From: Paramicrosporidium saccamoebae KSL3
Lineage: Eukaryota > Fungi > Cryptomycota
Assembly: GCA_002794465.1 (NCBI GenBank)
Contig: MTSL01000159.1
Coordinates: 1,298-33,297 of the forward strand
DNA length: 32,000 nucleotides
Direction: 5' to 3'
Position numbers and translations under genes: made by a program. Positions 1-22,805 of the stretch are shown in pieces. How positions within the stretch are numbered: position 1 is the first letter of the stretch; every line of letters starts with the position of its first letter. Below the pieces are notes generated by a model. That model did not search any database and was not told where the DNA came from. It saw only the letters and a program-made list of their open reading frames with translations.

Positions 1-7
1 CGTATTC

Positions 8-154
8 GTGTGCTAAAGTGGATCGCTTTGCTGGGTATCTAAGGACAGTGAGATGTGATGTGTATCTATACTATTCCAGGATTAGCAATGAACAGATTTC
101 CGCATGACTTGGGTCGTGGTATTATCCCCACTATGCGACAATAGCAATCCATTA
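8..154. ncRNA. Unassigned structured element, copy A (paralogue of 21851..21998)
   Basis: Shares collinear blocks with 21851..21998: GTGTG[C/A]TAAAGTGGA, GCTGG, GGATTAnCAnnGAAC, TTCCGCATGAC, GTGGTAT[T/C]ATCCCCACTA[T/C]GCGACA and TCCATTA. The overall span is the same (147 vs 148 nt) and there is hairpin potential. The repeat is directly visible; the ncRNA call is inference. Confidence 0.5.
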
Positions 155-261
155 ACGTTCTGTAAATGGCGTGTCATAGTAGACTGATTAGACATGATCT
201 CTTAAAATATACTGAAATCATTGCCTCAAAGTAAGAACTTTGCAGTGTAACGAACTTACCA

Positions 262-1125: not shown

Positions 1126-1174
1126 GGCTGCGTAATCTGCATGTTGTCACTACCTCATTCATATACCGCTCTGT

Positions 1175-1265
1175 CCAATGTTTAGCCTGCAACCAATCAG
1201 AAGCCTGGGTTTTCTCACTGAACCTCGGCTGGCTGCCCAATAGGCAGACTGCCAAGCGAACCAAT
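1175..1265 (+). promoter_or_regulatory. Cluster of four CCAAT boxes in the divergent promoter upstream of TOR
   Basis: CCAAT at 1175, 1193, 1237 and 1261, all on the + strand within 91 nt. Function is inferred. Confidence 0.45.
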
Positions 1266-1304: not shown

Positions 1305-4300
1305 ATGGAAAAGTGGGAATCTGCCCTTCAGTCGTACTTGCATCGTTTAGTTGACAAGTATATTGCACTAAATAGTTTCTCAGCATGTTAGGAGTCGGGC
1401 TGTCCAAGAAGCGGCGGCTGAAGGTCTAGCGGTGGAAGTTAAACGTTTAGCCACCTTACTGTCTAAAGAATCATTCAACAAGCTTATGCACGAACTAAAT
1501 CGTCGATTATATGAAATGGTTCATGGTGCAGACATGCATGAAAAACAGGCCGCTGTTATTGCCATAGGTATCCCCAACTCGCCATTGACTCGGTAGCTCG
1601 CCTGGCTGAACAGGCAACGGATGAGACCCTGTCCAACCTGTCCAGATATGCAAACTATCTTCGTACACTGATACCAGGGAGAGATCTGGTCCTCACAGCC
1701 AGCTCTGCCAATGCTCTGGCGCGCCTAGTTGTCGCCGCTATGGGAACCGCCTTGGCCGCAGAATTGGTAGAGTATGAGTTTGGTCGCTGCTTTGAATGGA
1801 TCTCAGAGCGTAATGAAAACGGAACGATTTCTGCCATGTTAATTTTTAAAGAAATGATCGAGCTTTCCCCAACTCTTGCCTATCCTTTTATCATGACTCT
1901 GATGGAGCTGACGTGGTCAGTCTTGTTGTCGTCCAAGAGTGCTACACTGCGTCAAGTCACTGAAGACACTCTGCGGTCCCTCTTGCTATGTTTCCGCGAC
2001 CGGTCTGATCAAGATTCCATAAGTGAGATTATTGGTAATGTGGCAACGGAAACTATTGAAAAATTGCGAGACTCCACTACTATTCCACTCAGTGCAATTG
2101 CTGGGATCGCCATCGTAACACAGGTATTTCCCTCCCTAGTTAGAGAGCGCCACTTTGAAGGCTTTATTTTGGTCGTCCTTCAGCTGGCAACCTTGAAAGA
2201 TTCAGCAGTCAAGCAAGCAGCGTTCTCTCTAATTCCTGAGCTGGCATCCCTGAATTCAAAATCATTTTCTGGCTCCTATTTGGAACAATGGACGCAGCTA
2301 TTAATTGAAATTTTGAACAAGAAGGACAAGGAGCGAGTCATTACTTTGAAAGCAATCAAATGTACAATCGATAGCTTGGGGAGTGAAATTTTGCCTAGCG
2401 TGGATTCCCTTAACCGCTCTCTTCGGCAATTGCTATTGACAAGATCAAAGCTGCGCCCTGCTGAGGAGACTGAAATAATGGACTGTGTAGCTTCCCTAGC
2501 TCGTGCTCTAAAGGGAGCTTATCAGAATTCAGTGAGGACTCTTCTTCCAGCCTTACTGGCTGGTGAGCTAAATTCAAGTCTGCGGTCGGCCCTTCATTCC
2601 ATCGTAGAGAACGTTCCCAATTCAATGCCTCTAATCGAGGATCATCTTTTGGGATCTGTTGGAAGGATATTGGATACCGACAATGATCCGGCGAGCGAAT
2701 CCCAAATTGTTTTCGCATGTGAGACCATCACTCGGTTTAATTATTGTGAGCCTATGCTGGATACAAAGTTGGGTGACAAGTTGTTCAGTCTTTTGTCCAG
2801 TACCTCGGTAAGTCTAAGACAGGCTGCCGCGTTATCATTGGCTCATTTGTCTTGTCGACCGATTGGAGGAGAGTTTTACGAGTCATTCCCCAGTGTAATC
2901 AAGGTTGTGACTCTGCTGTTGACTCTGTCATCGTCCGATCCAGATGTAAATCTTCGCTCCGCTGTGCTTGAGGCGCTCAATGCCGACTCTCTAGACTTTT
3001 ACTTGTCCTCGACGGAGCCATTTCACATTTTATTAATGATTTTGAGCACGGGGACCTTGGCCTGTCGATTGACAGTTGTCTCTGTTGTTGAACGTATTAC
3101 ACGACACAATACTGGCCTGATTTACCCACATTTTCGCTCCATACTTTTACAACTTCTGGCCGATCTTGGCTGTCCACATCCCAAGAGCATATCTGAGGAT
3201 GCGGCAGTGGTATTGTCAGAAGTAGCCCGTCTCCCTGCTTCCCTTCTAAAGCCCACTGTAGAACCGCTACTGCGAGCTCTTTCTTCTCGACTTTTGGATC
3301 CCAATCCAAACACTGCTACGGCGGTGCTGGTCACGCTCGGAAGGCTTGTTCAGGTCAATCCGCAGGCCTTTAATAGCCATGCTCTTTCTCTTGTCAATTC
3401 CATTTCCAAAATTTTGGGAGATCAGAGTTCATCCAAGAGGCGACTGGCCGCGTTGGGATTCTTGTGCATGCTTTTGAGAAATGTGAATCGGGCCAAAATT
3501 CCATCAGAACGTCTCGCCGCTCTTCTCTTGGAAACTGCCGATTTGCTACGAATTGAACTCGTGCGTCCGGTGCGCAACGAGGCGATCAAATTAATTGGTA
3601 TCATCGGTGCTCTTGATCCATACAAGATGCGCGCACTTGAAATGGAACAGCAGCTTTGTTTAAATAATGCTCAACCAGAATCCTCTATTGAGGATGCCCC
3701 GGCATCGGACGTTGTATCCACGCTTTCGGATGATTACTATCCCAGTGTTGCAGTGTCCTCTTTGTTAAAGATTTTGGGAGACGCATCTCTCGGTAAACTG
3801 CACGCCGGAGCAGTGCAGGCCCTGCTTGCAGTTTTCCAGTCTATGGGGGTTCGCAGTGCATCCTATCTAGTTCAAGTGATGCCCGTCATTTGTCGAATTC
3901 TCTGGCAATCGGGCGATCGCGACAAGGCCATTGTCACTTATACCCTTCAAGCGCTTTCAGCATTGATCACTACTGTTGGACTACATATTAGACCCTTTGC
4001 TCTTGATTTGGTCTCAGTTGTCAAGGAACTCTGGAATAGCCGGGATGTAGGAATGCTGTCACAACATTCCGATGTTGCCCTCAAAATGGCCCTTCTCTCT
4101 GTGATTCGAAGCCTCTCTGACGCCTTGGGTGGAGAAACCTTGGTCGAAATTGTCTCCTTTGTTCCAATGGTTGTCTCCATGTTGTCAGTGAGACATGCCG
4201 AGTCAAATTCTGAGCTCATGATTGTGACGCTATCTGCCTTACACAGCTTGGCGGGATACGCAAGGGACCATGTGCACTCTATAATTGCGGCGATCAATGA

Positions 4301-7300
4301 ACTTTTGATGGAAACGACGGCTTCCAGTGAATTTATCAAAAGGTCGATTCTGCTTGTCCTGGAATTGGCCGACTGCGCAGACATTCGTCTTGATCTTCCC
4401 TTAATTGTCCCACTCATTGGGATTGCACTAAATTTGGATGGCGAAAATGTCAAGACAGTTAGGGTCGCTGATCGGCTTGCTTGTTATTTGGCAATCAATT
4501 TCTCGGAAGAATTTAATCCGCTTCGCCGACAGGTTCCTGCTGAAAAGCTGCCGGCACTGAGCCGCCTACTACGCCATTCTCTCGCCCAGCCATTGACCGG
4601 CTTATTCATGATTGATGAGCTGTTGCTGGGAGTAGAGGATCTGTCCCTGAGTGCATCGTCAGAGCAGTTGGTACCCCGGATACCTACTGTAACCACTACG
4701 CCGGTTGGAAAGTTGGCAATAAATGAGCAGAATCTGAGGAGGAGCTGGGATTCCTTTGACTGTAACAGCAAAGAAGACTGGTTCCACTGGATTCGTCGTT
4801 TTGAAGCCGAATTGCTCAAAGAATCGCCAGCGCCCTCTCTGAGGGCCTGTTCTCATCTGGCCCTTAAACATTATCCGCTGGCTAGAGAACTTTTTAATGC
4901 AGCTTTTGCTGCCTGCTGGAATGACCTCTCTGACGGATTGCAAGATGAGCTCGTGGGTGCATTAGAGGCCGCACTAGCCTCCATTAGCATCCCTCCCGAG
5001 GCAATGCAAATAATTCTTGGATTAGCCGAATTTATGGAACGGGACGACCGTCCTCTTCCCATGGATGTTGCCACTTTGGGGGCCTATTCCATGAAATGCC
5101 ATGCATATGCAAAGGCTCTGTACTACCAAGAGACTGAATTTCAAAATTCCCCATCTGCTGCCTCAGTGGAGGCGCTTATTAGTGTAAATAGTCAAATTCA
5201 GCAGCCAGATTCGGCTGCGGGGATCCTTGTTTGTGCGCAGAAGCAGCATGGGATTGTTCTTGAAGAATCGTGGTATGAAAAACTACAACGCTGGGACGAC
5301 GCTCTCTCCGCCTACCGGGCCAAGTGGGAACGGGATCCGCAGAGTTTTGATGCTCTCTTGGGCATATTCCGTTGTTGGCACGCCCTCGGGGATTGGGACG
5401 CACTAAATTCACTTGCTACCGATGTTTGGCACGACGTGCCTCCTCCAGTTCAGGCTTCCATCCTCCCCTTAGCAGCCTCGGCAGCATGGAGTATAGGTGA
5501 TTGGAACAAGATGGACGAGTATGTGGCCAAACAATCGCCCAACTCTCTCGAGGGTGCAGTTTTTAGATCTGTGTTAGCCATTAATCACCAAGTTTACGAT
5601 GAAGCGGAGCGCTATGTCACTACTACAAGAGAACTACTTGATACCGAGCTCACAGCAATGTTGGGTGAAAGTTATAGTCGCGCCTACAATACCATTGTGA
5701 GGGCACAGACCCTCTCCGAGTTGGAAGAAGTCATTGCATTCTGTCAGGCTGGAGATGATTTAAAGAGACGAAACATTATTAGAAGATTTTGGTCAAGCCG
5801 GCTGGACGATTGTCAGGTCAGTGTTGATGTCTGGCAGAGAATTTTAAAGATCCGCGCTTTAGTGACCCCTCCTGAGGAAGCACAGGCACGCTGGATTAAA
5901 TTTGCGACATTGTGTAGACGCAATCAGAGGCCTTTAATCTCCCGAAGAATCTTATTGGGTCTGCTCCACGTTGATGAACGCCAAGTAGATTCGCTCGATC
6001 TAACTCAAGCTTCCCCTGCCGTTGTTTATGGTTTTTTAAAGCATAATTGGGAACTCGGAGAGCGTGATGTTGCCGTACGATATTTACGTCAGTATGGACG
6101 CTATTTGGCACAGCTGTTGGATCGCAAGATGGCTCAAACTCAGCTCCACGGCGGCGCAGCGCCCGGGAGCGCTGAAGCGATGGAACTCGAAGATCAGACG
6201 AAACTGCTGGCAAGATGTCATTTCAAGCTCGGAGAGTGGCAAAAGTTCATTTCAATTGAAAAAGGCGAAGAGATTAATAGTGGGACAATAGAAAGCTACC
6301 TTGCCGCCACCTCATACGATAAGAATTGGTACAAAGCTTGGCATGGATGGGCACTAGTGAATTTCGAAATGGCCATGACACACGAACGGAGACAGAGTCA
6401 GGCACTTTCGTATGGAGCGAGCTTAGGCATTCCTGGCCAACGGAACGGTAGATTGAACCCATATCTAGTGCCCGCAATTCAGGGATTTTTCAGATCAATC
6501 GGTTTATCAGATGGGAACAGCTTGCAAGACTCGCTCAGGCTTCTCACACTTTGGTTTAAATATGGCGCACTTGCAGAGGTAAATGCGGCTGTTGGTGATG
6601 GATTCCATTCTGTTCCGGTCGACAATTGGCTCCAGGTTATACCTCAATTGATTGCTAGGATCCACGTACCCAGTCCACAGGTTCGTCGTCTGATCCATCA
6701 TTTGTTGAGCGACATTGGAAAACAGCATCCCCAAGCCCTCATATATCCCCTCACCGTGGCCAGCAAGTCCCAAAGTGTTGCCCGTCGAACTTCGGCCCTC
6801 GCAATCTTGGACAAGATGAGATCTCATTCAGCACGATTAGTCGAGCAGGCAATCATGGTGAGCCAAGAGCTTATCCGAGTTGCCATTTTATGGGAGGAAA
6901 TGTGGTATGAGGGCTTGGAGGAGGCCTCTAAGCAATACTTTGGCGAACACAATGTGCCCGCCATGCTGAGCATATTAGAGCCGCTCCATCAACTGATTGA
7001 AAAGGGACATGATACAGCTCGAGAGCGGGCATTTTTAGAAGCCTACAGTGGAGACTTGAAGGAGGCTCGGGAACAGTGTCTTCGATACAAGAGGACTGGA
7101 AATGCCAATGACTTGAACACTGCCTGGGACTTGTACTACCAAGTGTTTCGTCGTATCAGTAAGCAGCTGCCACAACTTGGAGCAATTGACTTGGACTCTG
7201 CTTCGCCTCGACTCTTGGCTGCTGGCGACTTGGATATTGCAGTTCCCGGAACTTATAGAGCGGGAGGCGCGGTAGTCAAAATCACTTCATTTAGCCCCAC

Positions 7301-8465
7301 AGTGGGGGTCATTAGTTCGAAGCAAAGACCGCGAAAATTGGTGCTCGTTGGCAGTGATGGACAGAGATACAAGTATCTACTCAAGGGACACGAAGACTTG
7401 CGTCAAGATGAGCGCGTGATGCAGCTTTTTGGACTGGTCAATACAATTCTTGAGATAGATTCCGAGACCCAGAAGCGACACTTGATGATTGAGAGATTCG
7501 CCGTTATTCCATTATCCCAGAATACAGGACTAATTGGCTGGGTTCCTCATTGCGACACAATCCACTCACTGATTCGTGACTATCGAGAGGCTCGCGGGGT
7601 GCTACTCTCCATTGAGCATCGGCTGATGCTTCAATTTGCACCCGATTATGATCACCTGCCGACGATCAACAAAGTGGAGGCGTTTGAATATGCCCTGGGA
7701 AACACGGACGGACGTGATCTTGGACGTATAATGTGGCAACGATCGCTTACCTCTGAGCTCTGGCTTGAGCGTCGTCTCTCCTATACACGCTCGTTAGCTG
7801 TCATGTCCATGGTGGGCTATATTCTTGGACTAGGCGACAGACATCCTTCCAATCTGATGATTGACCAAGTATCGGGACGTGTCGTTCATATAGACTTTGG
7901 AGACTGTTTTGAAGTTGCGATGCAACGCGACAAATTCCCTGAACGGGTTCCATTTAGGCTGACGAGAATGTTGGTCAAGGCCATGGAAGTCAGCGGAATC
8001 GAAGGCTCGTTTAGGATCACTTGTGAACACACGATGCGCGTTTTGAGAGGAAATAAGGATTCTCTCATGGCAGTGTTGGAGGCGTTTGTCTATGATCCTC
8101 TGATCAATTGGCGTTTGTTGGCAAGGCCGGAGCCGGCAAAGCCAAGTACCCTGACTGGAAGTTCAGGATATTCGGAACTGAGCGGTGAAACTGGGATTGC
8201 GTTCCCGGAAAACTTTTCATCCAGTAGACGTGTTCGTCGTGACGCTGAAATTTCTCGTCTGGAGGACGAAAGCATCAATCGTCCCGAAGCCGTCAATGCC
8301 GGCGCATTGAATGTAATCAATCGCGTGTCAAACAAACTCACAGGTCGTGATTTCCGCACCGCGGCGCCCCTAGATACAGCTGCCCAAGTTGATCGTCTTG
8401 TAAATGAAGCCACACTTGTTGATAATTTATGTCAAGCCTACGTTGGATGGTGTGCATTTTGGTAA
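1305..8465 (+). CDS. TOR: Serine/threonine kinase TOR (PIKK), ~2365 aa; exons 1305-1357, 1392-1567, 1597-8465 (alternative in-frame ATG at 1284)
   Basis: HEAT-like N-terminus (SRYANYLRTL, ELVEYEFGRCFEWI), FAT domain, FRB (LWEEMWYEGLEEAS...AWDLYYQVFRRI), kinase motifs (LLKGHEDLRQDERVMQLFGLVN, GLGDRHPSN, HIDFGDCFE) and FATC end (LCQAYVGWCAFW*). GT-AG introns of 34 and 29 nt restore the frame. Confidence 0.97.
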
Positions 8466-8647
8466 ATTGTGGATGTGATGATTGTGCTGAGCGTGGTGAA
8501 TGTGTCGAGGGGGACGGATGTGTCGGGCGTGATTCTTGTAGTAATTGCGTTTGTAACAGAGACCGATGGTTTTGATCCGTGGACCTGAAAAGTTTGTGAT
8601 AAAAGTTTGCTATTAATGTGCTGATATGTAATCACTGGATGTACTCG

Positions 8648-8755
8648 CTCACAATAGACCCTTCTCCCTAATCAATGGATGGAACCCCTCGCAATAGACC
8701 CTTAATTCACAATCCAGTCTCTCACAATAAGCCCCTAATCCATAATCAATGGGTG
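8648..8755. repeat. Three degenerate tandem units (period 33-40 nt), core CTC[A/G]CAATA(G/A)(A/G)CCC..TAAT
   Basis: Units start at 8648, 8688 and 8721: ctcacaatagaccc, ctcgcaatagaccc, ctcacaataagccc. Units 1 and 3 both end in taatcaatgg. Confidence 0.7.
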
Positions 8756-8801
8756 CATTTTCTCGAAATCACACACCAGTTTCAACTTTTAGTGTCTTTT
8801 A

Positions 8802-9131
8802 TTATGGTTCCCGCCATTCTTGTCGACACATTGGACATTGACTGTTCTGTTCGTCTTGCTGTTGTAGCCACTTTACGATGCAATGCATATGGAATGCATG
8901 TCGGCAGGCACCCGTCACTAAAGGAAATGAGGGACTGACATGTCGCCTTACTTAGGGGACAATCATCGCCAGGGAAGCGACACGCCGGACATGCGGCCTC
9001 GTACTGATGCTGGCAAATGCCACAGACCGTCTCATTGTTCACCTGCCAGTGCCATGTTCCCACAGCTAAATATCTAAAAAGATACGCAATGAAGACAATA
9101 GCAGCTACTTGGTCACCCGGACGCGGCCCAT
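8802..9131 (-). CDS. APC11: Anaphase-promoting complex RING-H2 subunit APC11; exons 9131-9109, 9073-8952, 8917-8802
   Basis: Spliced protein [86 protein letters not shown]. The PGDDCPL, H.FHMHCI.KWL and CPMCRQEW motifs are APC11-type. Introns are 35 and 34 nt. Confidence 0.93.
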
Positions 9132-9192
9132 GGCTTCAGGGGACCTGTAATTGTCCAGGCTAAATACAGTTCGACTAATACAACAGCAAAGT

Positions 9193-9658
9193 TTATTGGC
9201 GTCTGTCACCGTGATGGCCACCGCCTCTTCCTCCGCGGCCCCGTCCCCTCGAGTCTCCACGACCCCTTTGTCCTCCACGACGGGGACCTTGGGGCCGTTT
9301 GTTCAGTTCTTTGGCATTGTCCATTACCTAAGGATTAGTCTGCAGCATCACCATTTGGTATACCTCCTCAGGGAGACGGACAAACTTGATCGTGCTCCCA
9401 CGAATAAATGTCTCTGCTAATTTCCAAAAGCGATTTCCATCAGCCGATGTTTGAATGACCTCGGAAAGATGCAAATTCATCCATATATCGCATTTGAGCA
9501 AGACTCCATTAAAAGTTTCCCCATTCTTCACCTCAACCAGCTAAACAGGATATGAGTAAATATATTTGCAGTTCTTTACAATTGCACTCTTCTTGGCTGA
9601 ATTTAACAGTCCCAAAGGTAGCTACAGGGTCACAACAGCAAAAGATGCATACCACCAT
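9193..9658 (-). CDS. LSM4: U6 snRNA-associated Sm-like protein LSM4 with RGG tail (119 aa); exons 9658-9653, 9621-9580, 9540-9364, 9327-9193
   Basis: MVLPLGLL...LVEVKNGETFNG..L.KCDIWMNLHL.EVIQTSADGNRFWKLAETFIRGSTIKF, followed by RGGQRGRGDSRGRGRGGRGG. Introns are 31, 39 and 36 nt. Confidence 0.93.
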
Positions 9659-9735
9659 CGTTGAGACTGGTTAATCAGGAAAGATAAAATTCGAATTTTC
9701 GTTTTCCTCTGTCTAATTGCGCGTCCTCCACGGCG

Positions 9736-12700
9736 ATGGAACGTAGCTGGCAGGAGTTGCTGGGCCGCATATGTAGCAAAAGTAAGCATAAGAATTTTTG
9801 ATAACCTGCTTGTAGGTGCTCCTTGGTGCATTGAGGAGCTTTCGGCGCTACGGGACCAATTGGAGGTTATACCCACGGCAGCCCAGGGAGAATTTGTGTC
9901 AAAGTTGGTTCCTTGGGCACTGCAGCAGCTAAAGGATGTCAAGGTCAGTCTGGATGGAAATTCTGGAGAGCATTCGGGACGGCTTGCTGTACTCATGGTG
10001 ATGCGTGTATTGCCAACATATATGGAGGCAGTTAGACCTCATGTTGATGCAATCATGCCAGTGCTGCTCAATATCATGACAGACGATGCCGATGACAATG
10101 CTGTCGAGGCGATGCAGCTGTTCACAGAAATGAACAAGACCTATCGTTCTGCCGTTGAGCAATACGTACCTGCGTTTTTGGATTTCATCCTGGAACTCGC
10201 TCGAGATTTTGAGAAAAACTCCATGGCCCAAATATTGGAATCGACCAGACGCGACAGTTCCAAGGATGGAAAGACTCTGTGCATTTCGCGTGAATCTACT
10301 CGCCTTCTTAACGACGCACCGGTGATGATTGTGCTCATTTTCCAACTCCATCGTCGCTTCATTAACGAATACATTCCTCGCTTCGTCCCAGTAGTTGTGC
10401 AACTTTTGGAAGTTGACTCTGAGCGTCCTCCCTGCAATCCACCAGAAATTCGTAGCTTGGAGGATCTCGGAAGGGAAACATTTTCGTCTTCGCGAGGAGC
10501 CTTCAATGAGTACATTTCAACTCAGATCAAGGTACACGCATCTCTTTGTAGGCTGTAATGTTGTTTAGGTCCTTTCATTCTTGGCATATATTGCGCGCGG
10601 CTTCGCACCAACCTTGAGAGAATATAGAGAGACAATTCCAAACATTGTGGTTCGTCTCCTGACGCGATGTCCGCCTGAGGGCGCCCCAGCTCGAAAGGAG
10701 CTTCTTGTTGCAGTGCGGCACATCCTGTCCACCGAACTTCGGCAATCCTTCCTTCCCCATTTGGATACTTTGATGGATGAACGACTGTTATTGGGTGAGG
10801 GCTACACTGCACACTATATATTCCGTCCCGCGGCGTACAGCATGCTGGCTGATTTGATTCACCACGTGCGTCTGGATCTTGATTCCAACATCATTGACCG
10901 TGTTATCGGCATGTATAGCCACGCATTGCACGATCCAACTCTCCCAAACGGCATTCAAACAATGTCCATCAAACTCCTCCTCAACTTGGTAGATGCCATT
11001 GCCAATGAAAAGTTCCCTGCAGCCAAGCGGCGTGACTGCTTTATGAGAATCTTGACGACTCTGCTGCTCAAATTTGAGTGGCTGCAAAAAGTGGTCTCCG
11101 AGCTTTTGATCCTTCGTAAAGCTGGAAGCACATCTTCGCCATTTGATGAACGTCGATATGACCCATTCTTTGATGATCCTCTGCGGGCCAGACCGATTCC
11201 TACGGATAGCCTGGCACTTGATCCCAGTAGAGACAATATCCGAGACCTAAAGTTCCAATTGAAGACTTTGATTAACGGAGTGAAGAATCTGATTCTTGCA
11301 CTTCGCACTACACCAATCTCTGAATCAAACTCTGCCACCAGCTTTACCCCAGAAGAAGGCGAAATGTTCATGGTCAAGCTCTTTCGTGACGGAATCCTCT
11401 GCTTTGAAATCTTTTACTTCAAATTCCCATCAGAAGAGAGTCCCGCTGGTTCCAGCAATTCAATGTCCAGTGCCAATTTGCAGATTGCGTCCACTCAGCC
11501 CAGCACCATTCCGCCTGATGAGAAGGATCTGATGGATCAATTTGGCTACATTTTCACTCTTCTTGATCCTGCGCTATTTAATGATGTAATTTCGTCAAAT
11601 ATGGATTTTTTGATCGAGAGAACCAAGGAGAATATTGCGTTGGTTTCGGTACCGCAGTATTTTTTGGCAATTTCTGGGATATCCAAAGGATTTGCAACTG
11701 TCCTCGCCCGTCACGTCGTTGATCGTTTTGAGGAAGTCGGATCGCCGAACCCCATCGCGGGAGCAGTTATCCTACGCCTATTCAAACTTTTGTTTCTGGC
11801 AGTCTCCGTTTATCCAGAGGAGAATGAATGTGTTCTCCAACCTCATCTGGCCGAAATTATCCTAAGCTGTTTCCGTCACTATCCAAAGGCAGCCACGCCG
11901 GTGAATTACTTTCTTCTGCTGCGATCCCTTTTTAGAAGCATTGGTGGCGGTCGCTTTGACAGTCTGTACAAGGAGGTGCTCCCTCTACTCCAGACGATAC
12001 TCGACGAATTGACGCATCTATCACCGAGTACAGCCGATCCAAGTTTGCGCGACATGTACGTGGAACTGTGTCTGACTACTCCAGTGCGATTGAGCAACTT
12101 GCTTCCGTTCCTATCATATCTTATGAAGCCCGTCTTGCTCGCCCTCCAATCCGGCACTGATCTGGTCAATCAAGGACTACGTACTTTTGAACTTTGCATC
12201 GACAACTTGACTCCAGATTTCCTCGAGCCGATTCTGGCACCCGTCTTTACTGACATTCTCAGCTGTTTGTGGAAGATGTTGAAGCCACCTCCAGCCAATC
12301 AGCTACACTCCCACACTGCAGTTCGCCTGTTGGGCAAATTGGGCGGTAAATCGCAACGATTCCTCACAACGCCTCCCTCGTATGCACACCGAAAAGCGGT
12401 TGGTTCTGGATTATTTTTTGAATTTCGATTCGACTTGCCTCCAGTAAAGACTATCCGTGTCCCATGTGATTCCATCGCACGCATAGCCATGTTTACTATC
12501 AATTCTCCAAATCGTAATCACGATGCCCGTTTCCAGGCTCTCGACTTTTTAAAGCGTACCATGGCGAGCATTTTGGGCAGATATGGCGTGCGGGAGAACT
12601 TGGAGGGGATCCAAGAGCGTCTGGCTTTGCTAAGGAGCCCTCCATCAACCAAGGAGCATTTGGATTCACTAAAGAGTCCTTCATCGTCTAAAAACGAGGC

Positions 12701-15700
12701 TGATCTGCTGGATGAGGGGAATGCCATGGCCCATGGCCTCGATATTCGTTTCTTAATGGAGGCAAACAGTGATCCTAATGATGGCACCATTGTTACTGAC
12801 GAGGCCAGCCGCCAGCTGCTCTGTGAAGTCGTGTGTGCCCTGTTTGATGCCTACGTCCAGCCAGAGTTGAGGGGCGATATTTCTGTGCTGTTAATCAGCT
12901 TTTATCGTCTAATCGTCCTCGCCTACCTTTCAAGAAATGATCAACAACAGCGTGTGCTTAGATGCATGGACTTTGACGTCTTGACAGACATCATGATGGA
13001 GTATACTACGGTCCAAAACGAGTCTCAGGCAACATTGGCATGGGATATCCTCTGTGGGATTCACGAGCAATATTCCCTGTGCATTCCCGACCGTGAAGTT
13101 CAGTTTGAACACAAAGTCCTGTTCCTGGTGGCCGACAAGGTAATTAGCGCATGCTTCCGCACAAACACCTGGCAACGCGTGGCTGCCTGTCGTACTATTT
13201 CGCATCTCTGTGACCTGGATCTGAGCCTGCGATTCTACTGGCACCATCAGATCCGCCTGATCCGCGGTGTTTTGTATGTGATGAAGTCCCTGCCTTCTGG
13301 AGCATCATCAAAGTACAGCGAAGAACTGACGGGTGTTGTTTTCAAGGTTCTCCGTCTGGCTAATCGTATTGATAAGAGCGACAAAAATTCACGAACCGAG
13401 GAATTTATGACACAGCACCAACAGTACTTTGACCAGGTCATGCTGGCCTTGGTCACTGAACTGTCTAACCCAAATGCCGTGGTCCGAGACGCAGTCAAGG
13501 CATCATTCCAACTTCTCAGTGACATCCAAGGATGCGAAGTCACTGATCTGCTGACTCCATTGAAAAGCCGAGTTTATGGTCCAATCTTTTCCAAACCTCT
13601 GCGTGCCCTCCCTCTTCATGTGCAAGTGGGCTACATTGATGCAATTACCTACTGCTTGGCACTTCGTCCGCCTCTCCTTGAGCTCCATGAAGAATTATTG
13701 CGACTTGTGAATGAGGCTGTCACAGTAATCGAGGCGGAAGATTCTACTTTAGTGTCCCGTGCTACGCAAGCACATAATGCTACCAACCTTTTGAGTCTCC
13801 GACTGGTCTGCATTAAACTCTTGTCCACGTGTCTTTCAAGTGCAGAATTTCAGCAAGCTCGTCTCCACCCCCTCCGCAACCAGATTGTCTCCGTCTTCTT
13901 CAAGACCCTTTATGCCCGTCAACCGGAGCTGGTGGACGTTTCTCGTGCTGCACTTGAGCAAGTCATGGCACAACAACATAAGCTTCCCACAGAACTCTTG
14001 CAAAACGGCCTTCGTCCTGTACTCCAGAGTCTTGGGGAGCCTCGACACTTGAATCTATCTGCAGTTGAGGGTCTTCGGCGCATTCTTCAACTCTTTTCGC
14101 ACTTTTTCAAGGCCGAGATTGGACGCAAACTTTTGGATCATCTTCATGCATGGGCAGATCAGCAAGCTAACGAGGCAAACAGCAAGGCGCCTCATCTGGA
14201 TGGCGCTGAAGTAAAGGTCATCACTGCTATCATGGAACTCTTCTGTCTATTACCTTCGTGTGGACAATTATTCATGGGCGATCTTGTCCAAGTTGTGTTG
14301 CAGCTAGAAGCTGTGCTGAAGCGTCGTGCCTCGTCTCCATTTAGACCTGTCCTGTTGCGCTTCATGGAGCTGTACTCTCAGGACGCTGTTTCGTATCTTT
14401 CCGAGAATATTACCAATGAATCTGTGGTCTCTCTCTTTGCTGCAATTCTCTGCTTGCCATTAGCCAACAAGGTGACTATTGAGCTGTCCAAATCCTTTGA
14501 AATAATTTCAGCGGCATTCCATTCAGAAAATTGCAATGTAGAAATCCGGATCCGCTATCTCATCCTCTTCCGTCAATATCTTTTGAAACACGCCGCCCTT
14601 TTGTCGGAAGCAAACGTTCAGCTGTTTGGGGGATACATTACAAAGTTTTGGGCTTTTCTCGTGTCTTCTGGAGGAAGATTCTCAGAAGCGATTCCCGTGG
14701 TGGCAAATCTATCAGCAGCCAATCCGCTGGAAAATTTGGTAGCAAAGTTGATTGGCGAAGTTACAACACTCTTTGTGAGCGCACATCCTGGACAGCTTGA
14801 CTGTGCATTTTCGCTGCTGAAAATCTTCCGTTTACCTCAGGTAATGGATGCAACCGATCTTCCTGCATTCTTCCGCGGCTGGCTGCGAAAGTGCTCGCCA
14901 TCCCTTCTCCGCGAAATCCATATCAAATGGCTTCGTCTCTACAGTGATCCCGAGACACACTTCACCACAAAGGAAAGATCAACTCGTCTTCTAATCCAGC
15001 CCTTTATGTCGGAAATAGATAGATTTTCAGATGCTGAAAGGGATATGATATTGGATGACGAGGTCTTTTCCTTGATCGACAAGGCCATCTGGCACCGCGA
15101 TTGTCGGGCGTGTGAAAATGGATCCTGTGTTGTTGCGGTGGAAGAGTTGCAGCTGACAGTTCTTTTGATGAATTCGATGAAGAAACATTGGCCCAAGCGT
15201 GCTGCTCAATATCAAGGCCGAATCAATTCCTTCCTGTTGAATCGCGTGCAATCTCTAGATTGTTCCGTGCGCTATTCTGCCTTGTACACTTTTGGTCTGG
15301 CTTTGGTAGAGTCAAAAGCTCCGCCGCAAGATTTGCTGCACGTCGTCTCGGCTCTGTTGTGTGCCCCTACCGCCGATATTAGAGCAATCCTAAAGTTGAG
15401 CTTTGACTTGTTCCTCCCATATCTTGCCAATCAAGGAAAGGATATCCAGGGACAGCTTGTTGGAAAGGTCGTCAGTTGTCTCTCCAAGGATGTATTTCTG
15501 ATGACTCTGGTCCTGTCGCTCTGGCAGTCAATTGGTCAGTATTCCGAGGAAATCTATCCCATTGCTGCCGACCTAATGCCCGCCTTGGTGACTTCCTTCT
15601 CTCGGTGTGGCCCCATGGCATTCTCAGCTGCCGATAGCCGCCCGATTACTCTGGATATTGCAAGCACTCTGTTTTCCTGGCACTCTCGATTGGGAAAATC

Positions 15701-18700
15701 TTCTCCGTTTCACAAAAATTCGCATCTATCAGATTTGATGGTCAACAGTCTTGTCCGGATCCTCTGTGCATTGCCTGACTATTCAGACACTTCCATCTTT
15801 AATCGCGGAATAGGAATCCTTGAACTGTATTTGAGGGAATTCTGTAAAAGTGACAGTCTCCTGCGTCTCTCTAGCTTGGAAAGAATGTTGGGCCCTGTGG
15901 AAAGTCAGGAGGAACAGCACGTTCCCATGATCATTTGTGGTGTCCAGGTGCTGAACTGCATTTTTCGAAATCGCGGACCCCTTCTGATCTTGTCTGACCT
16001 TACTCAGTATGAACGCTGGATCCGTTTGCTGCTCGAGCGATGTCCCGGGAAGGTGTTGGAGTCTTTTGGGGAATTACTATCCACCATATTTTACAAAATC
16101 TCCCAAGACGATATGCCTCCCTCCCCGGTGGAGGATTTGAGAGATTCAATCGTCGCCTCGGTTTTGGAAGGGCTGAATGCGGGCCGCAATATCCCCATCT
16201 GTTTTGCTGCCTTAAAGGCGGATTCGAGCGATATGATGCCGCCAGACACCATTTTGCCTGCTTTTGCTCGATCTTTCCAGCGCGCTGTTCGCGATCATAT
16301 TTCTCGTCAGGATTCGACCACGAGCGCGAACCCCTCAGACATTCAGTCTGCGCAACATTTTTGTAATCAAGTCCTCATTCCCGGTTTGGAATACGGAGTA
16401 AGACATATTGCACATTCAGATTTGCCGCGGAGCATCTTCCTGGGCTCGATGCAAACCCTGTGGGAGCACAATGCGGATTCCGAGTTGATGCGAATCTTGC
16501 TTACTCAAGTATTAACTTGGGTGCGTTCGTCTGATCCTGTGCCTTCACTGCGAGACAAAGTTGAGCTTTTATTAGTTCCCTGCAAGTCGGATTCTCTGAA
16601 TGATTGTCACTTGATGGAAATTTTTTTGGACATTACATTTGAAATTTACTCAAAGTCCACTTATGCCAAAACCGAGCTGCGATCAAGACTTGAGGGCGCC
16701 TTCATAAGGGGCCTGAGAAGTGACAATGACGCTAAACGACACGCATTCACAGATCTTTTAGACTCTAGTATTCCTCGTAATGTCCTGGCAAGACTGAGAC
16801 ACATCTTTGAAACTCAGAGGTGGGAATTGGCAGGATCTCATTACTGGATTCCAATGGCCATTGAGCGGCTTCTTGAGGCAGCGTCTGAAAACGGCCCCAC
16901 AGTGGCGCCCATGGATAGCTTCGAAATGTCCCCCGAATGGTTGGAGCGCAATTCGACCGTTTGCAGTGCAATTATCCCCTTATTCAACATGCTAGGAACG
17001 GTTGCAAAGAGTTCTACCCGTGAGCATGTGAGAAATATTGGGACATTGGCATCAATGGATAATAGTCTTGCTCATGGTTTGTGGATCTCATTGTTCCCTG
17101 CGATATGGTCTGAATTGGGTCCTGATAGTCATACTTATATGAACGGACGACTAACCCGAATAATTGCCAATGATTCTTTCCTCTGTCAAGCTCGCTTGAG
17201 ACCAAATGTCGTAAAGTCTCTTGTTGAATCTCTCTTGACATGTCAACCTCTTCCCTCTGTTCCGCCATTTTTGATTGCCTATGCTATGCGCACGTATGCA
17301 ACATGGTACTCTGGCTGTTTGTATTTGGAAAAGCTTTTTGAAAAGACTCCCGTCGATGTAAACCCCTCTGATGCGGCGACAAAGGAGCAGCCTTGGTCAG
17401 AGTTGGTGTCTTCCATGGGAGCAATGTACCGTGAGCTCGGAGAAAATGACTTTATGTTTGGGGCTTTTCGACGCGGATTCTTGTTGAATGAGACGAATAT
17501 TGCACTGTCGTTTGATCAAATGGACATTTGGCCGCAATCTCAAAAGCTGATTGAGGGAGCCATGTCAAAATGTCGCGCCGGAACCGTGCCATTTTCTGAA
17601 GCAGAGTTTTCGGTTTGGGAGGAACGTTGGATTGCAGAAGCCAAGGAGCTGCAACAATGGGATCTGCTGACTGATATCTCTCGCGCCGATATGGACGCTG
17701 AGCTTGGGCTTGAGTGTCTTTGGAGGTTGGCGGATTGGGGCTCAAGCGACACACACACTGCTGCTGCCAATCTGATAAAGTCTTGCCCAGAACCTACTTC
17801 GCGTCTCAAATTCTTCGAAGCATTCCTGACAGTCACTCAAAACCGCGAACAGTCTGATCGATTTAATCATTTCCAGACTTTGGTGGAAGAAGCACTTCAG
17901 CTGGCCTTGAATGAGTGGCAAATGTTGCCGCCTCATCCTTGCCCTGCCCATGCGCAAATTCTTCATAATTTCCAAATGTTGGTTGAAATTCAAGAAAGTC
18001 TCGCGCTTTATTCCAACCTCGCCCCCGCTGGTGGAGGAGCCTCTAATTTGTCGCGGCCCCAGTTCTTGGCTGATTTGAAGGGACTGCTTACTGCTTGGAG
18101 AGAGAGGTTGCCCAATTCCTGGGACGGAATGAACTTTTGGAGCGACATTTTGGCATGGAGACAGCATGTCTTCTCCGCCATCAATTCCGCCTTTGCTCCC
18201 CTCGCCTCAGAGTCTTCCACCGTTGGAGTGAATCCTCAAGGACAGGCTGCATCTGGAGCAAATCCCTCCTCAACCCATCCATTCGCATTCCGTGGATACC
18301 ATGAGATGGCTTGGCTTATTAATCGTTTCGCCCATGTTGCTCGCAAAAACAACATGACCGATGTCTGCTTATCCTTCTTGAATCGGATCTATACTCTGCC
18401 TAATATTGAGATCCAAGATGCATTCTTGAAGCTTCGTGAGCAGGCCAAGTGCTACATGGATACTCCCGCCGACTTGCCGACTGCACTTGAAGTGGTGAAT
18501 GCCACAAATTTAAACTATTTCAGCGGACTTCAGAAGGGCGAGTTTTTTGCACTCCGTTCGGTTATACTCTCGAGACTCGGAATGGTGGAAGAGGCAAACC
18601 GTGTATTTGCTCAAGCAGTCCAAATTGACTTGAATATGGGCCACGGTTGGGCGGCCTGGGGACGTTTCAATGATCAGCGATTTAGCCAGCAACAAGACAT

Positions 18701-21023
18701 TAATCTTGCAGTCAATGCAATCAACTGCTATCTCCAAGCTGCCACTTTGTTCAAGGCTCACAAGTCAAGGAGATTCTTGGCCAGGATTTTGTGGCTGCTA
18801 ACATTTGAGGATTCTACCGGGAGCCTGGGAAAATCTTTTGAAATGTACAATCACGATCTTCCAACATGGTTCTGGGTTTCGTTTGTCCCTCAATTGCTTG
18901 CTTCGCTTGCACGTAAGGAACAAAGACAGGCTCGGTTTGTATTGATCAAGATTGCAAAGAATTATCCCCAGGCATTGTATTTACCACTCCGTACGTTCCA
19001 CGAGGACTGTCGTCTACAATATGGGTCTCGTCTCGGCCTTGGTGGAACAGGTACCGATAATTGGGTTTATTGATTAATTGTAGACATCAAATCGCCCACT
19101 CCTTCAAATTCCCAGTCCCAGATCATGCCTCCTCCTTCGCAAAATCAAATGGCCAACGCGTCCCCCCATATATCGCAGTCCCCATTCCCACCAGGTACTG
19201 GGGAAAATTCTCAAGGCGATCCTGCTACCCATTCAAGAAAGCATCCATTTGAATCAGCAGAGGACTTGTTGTCGATTTTGAAAACAGGGTATCCGCTTTT
19301 AGCACTTACTATGGAAAATGCCATGGAACACATTGTCCATCGTCTTCGTTCTAGTGTTGATGAAGACTTTTATCGAGTCCTGACTTCATTGATTGGCGAG
19401 GCCTATCAACATATTATGAATCGCATCGCGGGTCATGGCGGCGCAGCTGGCCAAACGAATGCATTGATGGAGGCCTCGCTCCGTAGAGTATTCACAATGA
19501 TTTGCAACTCTTCTTCGCTGAGCCCCATTTACAAGGCCGAGTTTGAGAGAGATTTTATGGTTGTAGAATCATCAGATCCCAATTCTGTACTGGGTCGTCT
19601 GTTCATGTGGCGCAACAAGTTGGAGCCCAGTTTGAAGCGTCACCCACGTCAGTTAGTTTTGGATGGACTGAGCAGATTCTTGGCAGAATTCGAATACCAC
19701 CGCTACGATGAGATTGATGTGCCAGGACAGTATCTCCTGATGCGTGACGGGAATCAAGACTTTGTTAAAATTGACAAATTTGACGCATTGGTTCCCGTAG
19801 TCCGTCGCCATGGAACCTCTTATCGTCGGCTTGTTATTCGTGGCTCTGATGGTCAATTGTATCCATTCGCAGTTCAAAATCCGGCTGGCCGTCAAACGAG
19901 GAGAGAAGAGCGCGTCCTTCAATTGTTAAGATTCCTAGATGTGGCTTTGAAGCGAAGTCTCGATGGTCGTCGGCGCAACCTTTATTTTAATGTCCCAGCC
20001 GTGGTCCCTATATCCGCCCATGTCCGCCTGGTTGCCGATGATCCAGCACATGTCACCTTTGAGGAGATCTTTGAGTGGTTCTGCGAACAGCGAAAAGTGT
20101 CTTGCGACCAAGTCTTCCTGTACTTTAAAGAGCAGATCTTGTCGGAATTGCCCCATATCAGTCAGGAAGCCCCCAGAATGAATGTAGAGCTGCTTAATCT
20201 ACGGACGGATCTATTTACTAGTATTATTTCTACAATTGTTCCCAGTACCATCTTGACGAAATACATGGATCAAATGACGCTCTTTGCTGCTGAACGGTGG
20301 GTTTATCGTCGCGATTTCATCCGTCAACTCGGCACCAATCTGTTCCAAAACTACATATTTTCCATCGGACACCGATTTTTGCACAAGATTGGCTTCTCAA
20401 AGAAGAGTACGGCAGCTATTCAGACCGAAGTTTTGCCAAGTAAGATTTTTAGCCAGTAGCTTAATGATTTAGTGGTTACGGCGTCTGGTCAAATCTCACT
20501 CATTGAAATCGTTCCCTTCCGATTTACCCCAAATCTGCAAGAGTATGTCACGTCGATTGGGACTGATGGAGTTCTCCTGTCATCCATTGTATCATGTGGT
20601 CGGCATCTCTCCAAGGCCGACTCGGATCTGAATGAGTTCCTGTCAGTATTTGTAAGGGATGAACTTCTTCTTTGGTATCTAAACTACTGCTCTATACAGC
20701 AACAGCAGCAGAACGGAACTGAGAATGGAGAAAGTCAACCTTCCAATACCACCAAGCCGGGCCCAATGATTGGGGAAATTGTAGAAAATCCATTTGAACG
20801 ACTAGAAGCAGCCGGAATTGATGAAAAGACCTTCTTCTCTCGAGTCCAGCAAAATTGCGAGCTGATTATGAAAAGAACGCAGACTCTTTCTTGCATCAAA
20901 GAGCAGGAGCAAGTGTCAGAGCATCCAGCACCTTTATTCCAAACTGTCCTGGATCTGCTATCATCTGCTACAAACCCACAAAAATTGGCTCAAATGGATG
21001 GCCATTGGCATCCTTGGTTCTAA
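9736..21023 (+). CDS. TRA1: Tra1/TRRAP pseudokinase PIKK (SAGA/NuA4 subunit), ~3716 aa; exons 9736-9781, 9816-10531, 10569-19050, 19084-20439, 20473-21023
   Basis: Tra1 motifs QIK|VLSFLAYI, RKELLVAVRHIL, YFLLLRSLFRSIGGGRF, ELCLTTPVRLSNLLP, QGLRTFELCIDNL and FRGYHEMAWLINRFAHVARK. The PI3K-like domain is degenerate (no DRH/N/DFG) and the FATC ends DGHWHPWF*. Introns of 34, 37, 33 and 33 nt join four track ORFs in frame. Confidence 0.97.
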
Positions 21024-21057: not shown

Positions 21058-21756
21058 ATGAGACAGAGAATGCCAAATGCAACGTTATATGTCCATGTCC
21101 GCCGGAGATTTGTATCTCAGCTTCTGAACGGAGAGTTTTTGAATTTATCATGTGCAAGCCGGGAAACTCTGGACATTATAAGGGATCATTTTTCAATACG
21201 CCCAGATTTTGTTTCGGAAAAGGAACATTCTGATTTGGTTGAAGAAGCAAGGCTTGCCCTGAGAAAAACCAGCTGGAGTAAAGACCATTTCGATTCTGTA
21301 ATTCACCACTATCGTGAGGTATCGACTAGCCAAATTGGACGACTTCCTTGTCTCCAAAAGATTTACCAGACCAGGATCCTCCCAGCGTTCTTTCCGAACA
21401 GCCGCCCTTTGGATCCTCACATTCTTGAATTGGCTCCTGATGGATACATTCTGCCACATCTTGACAATGTAAAACGCACTTTATCATTTTAGTGACTGTA
21501 GTATTGTGGAAGTACAATAGTTGGCTTATCTTTGTTGTCGACACGCATCATGCGTTTTCGGCGTGCAAATAACCACGATGACTATTTTGAAGTAACCTTG
21601 CCGCCTCGATCAGCATACGTGCAAAAGTACGACTCCTCTCAGGTGAAAAGATAATTGTCTAGAGAGGCGATTCGATTTCACTTTGAGCATGAGATCAGGC
21701 CGGCAGAGTGTACAGAGTCTAGGATTTCTTTTCTATTCAGAGAACTACTATTGTGA
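21058..21756 (+). CDS. ALKBH7: AlkB-family Fe(II)/2OG dioxygenase, ALKBH7-like (start 21040/21058/21070 uncertain); introns ~21469-21501 and 21627-21662
   Basis: HFDSVIHHYRE, HILELAPDGYILPHLD, CGSTIVGLSLLS, IRFHFEHEI and RISFLFR match the ALKBH7 pattern (HxD...H...R). Confidence 0.85.
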
Positions 21757-21850
21757 GTTTTGTAAAAGCCTTCTATTGGTGTTTTGTGACGTAAAGGATC
21801 GATCAATTGGGTATTCGAGGATGACTCTCTAGTTTAGAGAAGACATATTT

Positions 21851-21998
21851 GTGTGATAAAGTGGACTGATTAGCTGGAGATTATAGAATTATCATGTTAT
21901 TTGTGAAGCTACAAATAGGCTGTTGGATTAACAGCGAACCGGTTCCGCATGACAAAGTTTGTGGTATCATCCCCACTACGCGACATTTTGGTCCATTA
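21851..21998. ncRNA. Unassigned structured element, copy B (paralogue of 8..154)
   Basis: Same conserved blocks and orientation as copy A. It sits in the 368-nt convergent gap between ALKBH7 and MBIP. Confidence 0.5.
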
Positions 21999-22124
21999 TA
22001 TATATTGACTCTCACACAGTGAGACTTGTAGTAAATGTTCTTGATTGGACATCCTAGTCCGTAGATACATCCTCTCTCAAGAATCTCGTGTCTTCTAAAG
22101 GCTATTCAATACAAAAATAAACAT

Positions 22125-22805
22125 CTATTTAGTCTGTTTTAGTAGTCTACTTCGAAGCTCGCTCATTCTTCGCTTCAACTCTCCCAAAGATGAGTCGTCT
22201 ACAGCGTCTGAATCTTCTTCCACCTCTTGGACAGCATCTTCTTTAACCCTTTTCTTACTTGCAGCGTTGCTGGTGGTACCAGGTAATTTTGATACCCGCC
22301 CACCAGGACGAGCGCTGGCCTCCGCTTCGGCCCTCCCGTAGTTAAACACGCGAGACGCAATCTGAGGATAAAACATCTCAATCTTTAGAATTTTATCTTC
22401 GAGGACTTTCACCCTCTCCACCAGCGACCTGTCCAAAGGTGCCACGACGATCCCGAGGTGAGTCTCAATATTCCTCACGCGCTCCTCCAGGCCGTTGAAA
22501 ACTGGACGGTCGGAGATATCGTGCGAAACGACAATTCCATGAGGAGATACAAGCTTTCCACAGGTCGAAGAAATTACAGATCGGCTCAGCGGGCCATCTT
22601 GGTTATCCACAACACTTGAGCGGATATGACTTTCCTTATTTATGAGCCTTGTATTCAGCCGTGCTGGTAGGCCAGAGTCCTCAACGGTTTCTATAAATTC
22701 TTCTTGATTTTGGCGGCCTATAAGCTCGCCTTTGTCCTTAATAAAAGCCGCGATTTCTTCTGTAAGATTTACGACTGGCGCGTCGTCCTGTATGCTGGCG
22801 TCCAT
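22125..22805 (-). CDS. MBIP: MBIP (MAP3K12-binding inhibitory protein)-like protein; start ATG 22805 or 22850; intronless
   Basis: EIAAFIKDKGELIGRQNQEEFI, SHIRSSVVDNQDGP and LEERVRNIETHLGIVVAPLDRSLVERVKVLEDKILKIEMFYP recall the MBIP blocks IEAFI..K..EINENN.REF, SH.K.S.VVN..GP and EERL.NIE.HL...P...Y.RIK.LEDKIL.LE..SP. Recognised from memory, not searched. Confidence 0.75.
   Translation of the reverse strand: MDASIQDDAPVVNLTEEIAAFIKDKGELIGRQNQEEFIETVEDSGLPARLNTRLINKESHIRSSVVDNQDGPLSRSVISSTCGKLVSPHGIVVSHDISDRPVFNGLEERVRNIETHLGIVVAPLDRSLVERVKVLEDKILKIEMFYPQIASRVFNYGRAEAEASARPGGRVSKLPGTTSNAASKKRVKEDAVQEVEEDSDAVDDSSLGELKRRMSELRSRLLKQTK

Follow-up and report, generated by a model that had tools for sequence, protein, structure and literature searches.

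The small nucleolar RNA (snoRNA) U3 pairs with 18S rRNA through its GAC box and its box A, which contact nt 19-25 and nt 9-16, respectively (PMC3130255). Fungal U3 genes are multicopy and independently transcribed, their box D (CTGA) is kept almost perfectly, no diverged paralog families occur, and a box consensus is available (PMC5832005). This work deals with a short repeated element that can be compared with such genes and that is present at two loci, A and B, in Paramicrosporidium saccamoebae contig MTSL01000159.1 (129,789 bp; NCBI GCA_002794465.1). The stretch analyzed, termed the window, comprises 32,000 nt and begins ~1.3 kb from the contig end. P. saccamoebae is an intranuclear parasite of amoebae that belongs to the Rozellomycota, a clade related to the highly reduced Microsporidia. 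According to the genome paper (accession MTSL00000000; Quandt et al. 2017), the gene space amounts to 76% and repeats to 0.53%, most of the latter being simple ones. A literature search found no paper describing the noncoding RNAs (ncRNAs) of this genome.

Both loci are tentatively read as members of an orphan, lineage-specific family of small structured ncRNAs that would be encoded on the + strand and tandemly duplicated at locus A; this sequence-based reading is favored at somewhat less than even confidence. The feature itself is real, non-trivial, and more complex than first described. The original prediction, made from the letters of the window alone, had placed two diverged copies at 8-154 (copy A) and 21851-21998 (copy B), sharing six collinear blocks. 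All six blocks were recovered with the predicted positions and identities, namely, GTGTG[C/A]TAAAGTGGA (8-22 and 21851-21865), GCTGG (30-34 and 21874-21878), GGATTA.CA..GAAC (79-93 and 21925-21939), TTCCGCATGAC (98-108 and 21943-21953), GTGGTAT[T/C]ATCCCCACTA[T/C]GCGACA (block b6, 116-140 and 21961-21985, 23/25 identical), and TCCATTA (148-154 and 21992-21998). The match between the copies is far beyond chance: their local alignment score is 65, and a 62-nt core piece was aligned by blastn with an E value of 1.8e-6. A covariance model, R1, was built from the two full copies and used to scan the window with filters off. It recovered the full unit at locus A (A1) at 4..156 (+ strand; 177.9 bits, E = 6.8e-33) and that at locus B (unit B) at 21847..22000 (+ strand; 176.6 bits, E = 1.2e-32), and nothing above 13.8 bits was found in the rest of the window. 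The element is thus longer than initially delimited, since homology goes on from at least positions 4 and 21847 (TATTYGTGTG...) and also covers an upstream leader.

This leader, the tandem arrangement of locus A, and an adjacent assembly gap were missing from the original prediction, and the copies exceed the two that it counted. A partial third unit, A0 (170..192, + strand; GTGTCATAGTAGACTGATTAG), starts 162 nt after the start of A1 and consists of the first 23 nt of the unit; aligned locally with the beginning of unit B, it attains a score of 25, a value reached by 0/1000 dinucleotide shuffles (p < 0.001). A gap of 143 N lies directly left of window position 1 (L001 11127-11269, L001 being a locus of the same contig), and on its far side the initial 26 nt of the unit are found again, three of them mismatched (GGTATTTGTGTGCTAGAGTGGATCGC). 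According to the scaffolder's estimate, the unit starts on either side of the gap are 170 nt apart. Given the repeated unit starts at A0 and across the gap, locus A is most simply a tandem array, probably with a period of 162-170 nt, in which a putative unit largely hidden in the gap is followed by A1 in full and by a third unit that is truncated. In the reference assembly, this array was probably collapsed or interrupted at the 143-N gap.

The leader is common to both loci and reads TGTGACGTA ... AGGATYGATYARTTGGGTATT. At locus B it comprises ~31 nt (21785..21815, + strand; TGTGACGTAAAGGATCGATCAATTGGGTATT), and at locus A the corresponding sequence falls beyond the window edge, on the reverse strand of L001 (~11290-11330), where it directly adjoins a unit start with no insert. 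Between leader and unit, locus B alone has a 30-nt insert (21816..21845, + strand), with a TATT direct repeat at its borders and the perfect palindrome CTCTAGTTTAGAG inside. Aligned without its terminal GGTATT, the leader scores 19, with a maximum of 27 in 1000 shuffles; adding the six GGTATT matches gives a score of ~31 by estimate, which is above this maximum. The leader may act as a promoter or form the 5' part of a transcript. A ~38-nt motif M, proposed to occur three times per locus, was rejected because statistical support was obtained only for the unit 5' end at A0 and for the shared leader. In shuffle controls, a suspected third motif copy upstream of B did not resemble the B unit (p = 0.79), and a conserved downstream tail, suggested by similarity of b8-b9, was not supported (p = 0.58).

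Conservation between A1 and B is patchy. Identity is 81% in the 5' block, 41% in the variable region (A1 35..78, + strand; 18/44 columns), which forms its own hairpin in each copy, and 73% in the segment from GGATTA to TTCCGCATGAC. A first spacer, 7 nt long in both copies, follows with 29% identity (5/7 positions rewritten), then block b6 with 92%, a second spacer of 7 nt in A and 6 nt in B with 14%, and TCCATTA with 100%. A 44-column window as poorly conserved as the variable region was obtained in only 0.15% of permutations (p = 0.0015). Gene-conversion tracts would be coarser than this mosaic, whose grain is 7-45 nt, and uniform neutral decay does not predict it; the pattern points to constraint on the blocks. 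These data bear on the main rival explanation, according to which the element is nonfunctional repeated DNA, be it a tandem repeat, a segmental duplication, or a mobile relic, that, having been copied to a second locus within the P. saccamoebae lineage, is undergoing decay, its stems being chance or inherited inverted repeats. This explanation is considered rather unlikely. Strong heterogeneity of identity over very short distances is not expected from decay, and the substitutions clustered in both arms of the terminal helix described below have left its pairing intact, so that patchy conservation and maintained stems appear to fit a structured RNA better than neutral decay.

Three helices, P1, Pb (CGCAU/AYGCG), and Pc, are present in both copies. 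In A1, the 5' arm of P1 (17..26, + strand; AGUGGAUCGC) pairs with its 3' arm (144..153, + strand; GCAAUCCAUU) at 9/10 positions, and two of these pairs are compensatory with respect to copy B. In the latter, the arms at 21860..21869 (AGUGGACUGA) and 21988..21997 (UUGGUCCAUU), both on the + strand, pair at 10/10 positions, three of them as G·U, which turn into A·C mismatches on the - strand. The conserved 3' hairpin domain (+ strand) extends over 101..137 in A1 and 21946..21982 in B. Pb is formed in A1 by CGCAU 101-105 and AUGCG 133-137 (5/5) and encloses Pc, in which GUGG 116-119 and CCAC 128-131 (+ strand) are fully paired (4/4) and flank the 8-nt loop UAUUAUCC. In B, Pb consists of CGCAU 21946-21950 and ACGCG 21978-21982, paired at 4/5 positions on the + strand (one A·C) and at 5/5 on the - strand, and Pc of GUGG 21961-21964 and CCAC 21973-21976 (+ strand; 4/4) with the loop UAUCAUCC. 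On the + strand, 94.7% of the helix cells are paired, compared with 24-50% after a shift of the 3' partners by 1-3 columns. The variable region folds as a hairpin in each copy despite its rewritten sequence, as judged from minimum-free-energy folds.

The better-supported covariation resides in P1, which reads GGAUCGC/GCAAUCC in A and GGACUGA/UUGGUCC in B. Its inner four pairs, UCGC/GCAA in A1 and CUGA/UUGG in B, have undergone seven substitutions in these facing 4-nt segments. From A1 to B these correspond to two double compensatory changes (U-A to C-G and C-G to A-U) and one change from G-C to G·U; at the remaining position, A1 has a mismatch where B has a G·U pair. The partial unit A0 carries the B-type sequence GACTGATTAG, which suggests that both arms of A1 changed together. 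For the 3' hairpin, two stems had been predicted to be kept in both copies. The inner GTGG/CCAC stem is indeed intact in both, but the outer stem is CGCAT/ATGCG in A and CGCAT/ACGCG in B, the changed pair being A·C on the + strand and G·U on the - strand. Between them, a compensatory rewrite from TTG/CAA to CAAAG/TTTTG had been proposed; it exists, but the helix has only 3 bp in copy A, crosses Pb, and overlaps the 3' arm of P1 with which it competes, and it is therefore given little weight. G·U pairs specific to the + strand are the three in P1 of copy B and one in P1 of copy A, and the one specific to the - strand is in Pb; the wobble balance, 3 to 1, favors the + strand over the - strand initially chosen.

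Under the ncRNA reading, the leader at each locus would serve as promoter or form the start of a transcript, followed by one unit at locus B and by a short array of at least two units plus a truncated third at locus A. The mature RNA would be ~140-150 nt long, with its ends joined by the 10-bp terminal helix P1 (AGUGGAYYGM / KYRRUCCAUU), which would enclose a freely evolving hairpin region plus a strongly conserved 3' domain. The latter, composed of CCGCAUGAC, a 7-nt spacer, the GUGG/CCAC hairpin with the loop UAUYAUCC, and CUAYGCGACA, may represent the protein- or RNA-binding part. A polycistronic precursor may release the units of locus A, in the manner of snoRNA clusters in fungi and plants, and P1 would set their ends.

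A protein-coding function is excluded, in line with the indel argument of the original prediction, because a 1-nt indel between the conserved blocks GGATTA.CA..GAAC and TTCCGCATGAC shifts their relative frame from one copy to the other and because the open reading frames (ORFs) disagree. The ORFs over copies A and B have 17 and 42 codons, respectively, on the + strand and 37 and 44 codons, in different frames, on the - strand, and no recorded gene call has the products of the short ORFs over copy B.

As predicted, this multicopy, noncoding element corresponds to no Rfam family. Using Rfam 15 with the gathering threshold of each family, no family reached its gathering score in the window or in L001-L003, L007, L010, and L011, the last five of which are from relatives of P. 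saccamoebae. In E-value mode, applied to slices of 106-451 nt from both loci, only chance-level scores of 11-17 bits were obtained, compared with gathering scores of 40-72 bits, and no U3 or other snoRNA model matched at E <= 10, including searches with slices of 106-281 nt. ARAGORN predicted no tRNA, whether or not introns were allowed, and no T-run terminator (at least 4 T) follows the element on either strand; a tRNA, a tRNA-derived short interspersed nuclear element (SINE), or another RNA polymerase III (pol III) gene was therefore rejected. The - strand contains an A-box-like TCGCRTAGTGG (10/11) and no B box.

Two snoRNA classes were likewise rejected. A scan of both loci for the kink-turn (K-turn) geometry of box C/D snoRNAs, in which box C (RUGAUGA) and box D (CUGA) adjoin a terminal stem, yielded many chance pairs, none of them at homologous positions in both copies. 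The sequence beside P1 in A1 is UUUGCUGG / GCGACAAUA, and CUGAUUA of copy B corresponds to UCGCUUU in A1, so that the G·A pairs of a K-turn are lost. The suggestion of an atypical ACA-type snoRNA or small Cajal body-specific RNA did not hold, since the 3' side of the 3' hairpin pocket measures only 1 nt and the ACA, which in this class stands 3 nt from the 3' end and 14-16 nt from the pseudouridylation pocket, lies only ~6 nt from the upper stem. The accompanying observation that no ANANNA H box is conserved in the hinge was correct for either strand; with this pocket geometry, a box H/ACA RNA was dismissed on both strands. ACA triplets are present in GCGACA on the + strand and in CACACA on the - strand.

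The resemblance to U3 appeals to the eye (GAC ... AGGAUC, the box-A-like UGUGUGCUAGAG, and an M2-like hairpin) and fails both in the Rfam searches and in shuffle-controlled alignment. Aligned locally with assumed sequences of human and yeast U3, the element gave p values of 0.52-0.97, the human-yeast control giving p = 0.002, and it lacks the universal U3 box GGAUCAUUUCUAUAG and boxes C', B, C, and D. Another proposed likeness, to the 18S 3' minor domain (h44/h45 and the 3' tail), was also at shuffle level (p = 0.47-0.89).

A possible link to 18S rRNA would be provided by the leader. The 18S 5' end sequence used for the duplexes is a universal one and not that of P. saccamoebae. With this assumed universal sequence, uninterrupted pairing with 18S nt 1-13 is predicted for the leader (GAUCAAUUGGGUA in copy B, GAUUAGUUGGGUA at locus A). 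Collinear pairing may extend over nt 1-29, and every departure from the perfect complement is wobble-compatible. The duplexes have predicted energies of -25.1 and -22.3 kcal/mol compared with a window background of -15.9 ± 3.7, placing them at about the 1st-5th percentile for an 18S sequence that is not the species' own. This pairing may be regarded as a lead rather than a finding. It supports, together with the GUGAC ... AGGAUC order that resembles the U3 GAC box and box A (PMC3130255) and with isolated UGAUGU/AGUGA/CUGA-like motifs, the view that the element belongs, in highly diverged form, to a known RNA class, either as a degenerate box C/D or H/ACA RNA or as a U3-like chaperone of pre-rRNA with a leader that would pair with the 18S 5' end. 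This view is judged improbable. No U3 or snoRNA model matches, K-turns of the C/D or B/C type are not found at homologous positions in the two copies, U3 alignments are no better than those of shuffled sequences, and so diverged a paralog would contrast with the near-invariant box D and the lack of diverged paralog families in fungal U3 (PMC5832005); the duplex energies, moreover, reach only about the 1st-5th percentile. A more specific proposal, considered very improbable, is that of a new small nucleolar-type RNA class of recent origin in Paramicrosporidium, which would be encoded by a tandem polycistronic gene and whose repeated leader motif would pair with the extreme 5' end of 18S (nt 1-13 and ~23-27), acting as a pre-rRNA chaperone or processing guide on a scaffold that is neither box C/D nor H/ACA.

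The alternative of the original prediction, an RNA of a non-autonomous element, found no support either: terminal inverted repeats at the homology ends, a target-site duplication, an A-tail, and a linked transposase ORF were not found, nor were TG...CA ends of the long terminal repeat type. A miniature inverted-repeat transposable element (MITE) was rejected because the 10-bp inverted repeat is internal. Homology continues at least 13 nt past its 5' arm and on through TATTYGTGTGMTAA and the leader, and on the 3' side it ends within ~3 nt, with no duplication at the homology boundaries. These features, as well as the low repeat content of the genome, also argue against decaying mobile or repeated DNA.

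Close relatives were identified in public assemblies by a search with the Tra1 C-terminus, and their contigs were examined; a corresponding search with the TOR N-terminus gave no match. The relatives found include the Logan assemblies DRR438482, SRR35124148, SRR12926096, and SRR26282673. The order of Tra1, an oxygenase-like gene, and a convergent gene is kept in all these relatives. The convergent-gene spacer that contains copy B measures 368 nt in P. saccamoebae, 150 nt in L002 (Logan DRR438482, 83% protein identity), ~180 nt in L007 (Logan SRR35124148, 72%), and ~0 nt in L003-L006 (Logan and JGI, 66%). The longer spacer identifies the element as extra sequence kept in a compact genome. Orthologs suggested by eye in the syntenic spacers were discarded, since no local alignment exceeded the shuffle null. 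The absence of the element from relatives and collections implies that the family is confined to P. saccamoebae as far as can be seen and represents additional sequence at both loci. An observation separate from this concerns the syntenic spacer of L002 (12416-12496), which contains a perfect box C (AUGAUGA) and box D (CUGA) ~70 nt apart and a 19-mer that matches 16/19 positions of the conserved 18S segment GTACCGATTGAATGGCTTA (assumed sequence) in sense orientation (p = 0.003 versus shuffles). This region may be an unannotated C/D snoRNA; its Rfam score is only 10.8 bits.

Several results weigh against the ncRNA reading. Transcription of either copy is no more than a prediction from sequence, and no known RNA class fits, conserved K-turn, H/ACA, Sm, or pol III signals being absent. 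The syntenic spacers of the nearest relatives lack the element, as judged by nhmmer, shuffle-controlled local alignment, and the covariance model with filters off, and exact-pattern scans for the core, two of JGI metagenomes and one each of GTDB genomes and IMG/VR, gave 0 matches; this absence would be expected equally of a gene of recent origin and of a recent duplication, be it selfish or accidental. With two full copies only, a shuffle control reaches the observed covariation score in 246/500 cases, the probability that P1 retains at least 3/4 pairs by chance, given the substituted positions, is ~0.16 (authors' enumeration), and folding energies are ordinary (z-scores of 0.04 to -1.3).

Several findings speak for decaying DNA. 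The element is missing at syntenic sites in relatives with 83, 72, and 66% protein identity at locus B and, within the short contigs at hand, downstream of homologs of the 248-amino-acid (248-aa) neighbor with 63 and 56% identity at locus A, and its folding energy is unexceptional. Tandem units, a truncated unit, and a gap flanked by unit ends at locus A, together with the 30-nt insert with TATT microhomology flanks at locus B, can be seen as hallmarks of slippage-prone DNA, and unrelated tandem repeats are present in the same spacer of P. saccamoebae (265-343) and of its relative L011. The former, located in the stretch that leads from copy A to the 248-aa gene's stop codon, is the 19-nt repeat CACTCTACACACACTTGCA, present 4.2 times with 86% matches, and the spacer downstream of the L011 ortholog (~915-1095) contains 8-nt and 11-12-nt repeats.

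The element may also be conserved as DNA rather than as RNA, in the form of a cluster of protein-binding sites, for instance as a promoter or upstream activating sequence, a terminator or insulator, or a replication origin, a possibility considered unlikely, if slightly less so than that of a diverged known RNA class. Conserved blocks of 5-25 bp, with spacers between them that vary freely in sequence but hardly in length, would agree with such a cis-acting role, as would the recurrence of GATTAG/GATTGG/GGATTA-type motifs within the element and the position of locus A upstream of a divergently oriented 261-aa gene. CCAAT-box-like CTGATTGG pairs precede the start codon of the 248-aa gene by 45-75 nt (1170-1200) and are also found upstream of a gene in the relative L010. 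Copy B, however, has a 3' end on either side, the two genes being convergent, and no gene that it could regulate, and CTGATTRG shows no enrichment in the window (5 matches versus 2.7 expected). Compensatory changes and G·U pairs that exist on the + strand only are not expected of protein-binding DNA, and a 25-nt block with 92% identity and a hairpin would be unusual for a transcription factor site. Irrespective of the element, the CCAAT-box-like pairs (CTGATTGG ... ATTGG) of the window (1170-1200, - strand) and of L010 (1165-1200), which in both species precede start codons by 45-75 nt, may represent a shared promoter element of the clade.

Locus A is flanked on one side by the 3' end of the 248-aa protein gene (379-1125, - strand) and on the other by the 5' end of the same-strand 261-aa gene, which lies outside the window. 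As had been pointed out, copy A lies beyond the AATAAA of its neighbor: the complement of this signal is at 354-359, ~200 nt away. Copy B is placed between the convergent 3' ends of a 2-oxoglutarate (2OG)-oxygenase-like gene, ending at 21756, and a 256-aa ORF, ending at 22125. The 248-aa and 256-aa neighbors are unrelated to each other, which rules out paralogous flanking genes as the source of the copies; the element is hence not a duplicated gene tail. Within the oxygenase-like gene, a ~36-nt GT...AG interval (21627-21662) resembles a very short intron, and the frame continues after it as AIRFHFEHEI..., matching GQLRWDFEHEV... of L002.

The window also holds TOR (1740-8465) and Tra1 (10581-21023, in three ORF pieces). 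These genes of the phosphatidylinositol 3-kinase-related kinase (PIKK) family are adjacent on the same strand (window 1740-21023; L001 1-9842), and the recorded gene call for MTSL01000159.1 merges them into one product of 6083 residues. Tra1 is broken at ~19073/19125 and 20459/20472, where short introns or frameshifts may be present. A perfect GTGATGA plus CTGA is found just 3' of the TOR stop codon (8470-8495), and the spacer after TOR contains three diverged copies of a 40-nt repeat (8616-8769) with the core TAATCAATGGATG...CTCGCAAT. Kinship of this repeat to the element was not significant (p = 0.09-0.96).

Sequences that are kept, duplicated, and patchily conserved in the short spacers of a compact genome are a good hunting ground for unannotated functional RNAs. 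If the element is transcribed, it would constitute a young, species-specific family of structured RNAs of no known class and offer a rare view of the birth and duplication of small RNA genes in a shrinking genome. If it is not, slippage-type tandem DNA would be seen to persist even in so compact a genome, and the element would also mark a misassembled spot of the reference, the 143-N gap.

Compared with known systems, the element shares with MITEs, SINEs, and short satellites that it is short, noncoding, and multicopy, is missing at orthologous sites, contains an inverted repeat, occurs in tandem and partial copies, and has caused an assembly gap. Unlike them, it has an internal inverted repeat and a patchy rather than uniform divergence, and it shows no target-site duplication, A/B-box pair, T-run terminator, A-rich tail, or tRNA-like head (ARAGORN). 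With U3 it would have in common a leader predicted to be collinearly complementary to the 18S 5' end (assumed sequence) and the GAC ... AGGAUC order (PMC3130255), whereas the U3 boxes and an Rfam U3 match are lacking and overall similarity is at shuffle level. It differs from the independently transcribed or polycistronic snoRNA gene clusters of fungi and plants in that it has no conserved C/D K-turn, H/ACA architecture, or Rfam snoRNA match, and in that its transcription and processing are here only predicted. It resembles these clusters in its ~150-nt noncoding intergenic units, whose ends are brought together by a terminal helix, in the tandem arrangement of units behind one upstream region, and in the lineage-specific gain and turnover that is typical of clusters. 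Although membership of every snoRNA class tested failed, the polycistronic snoRNA cluster appears to be its closest analogy.

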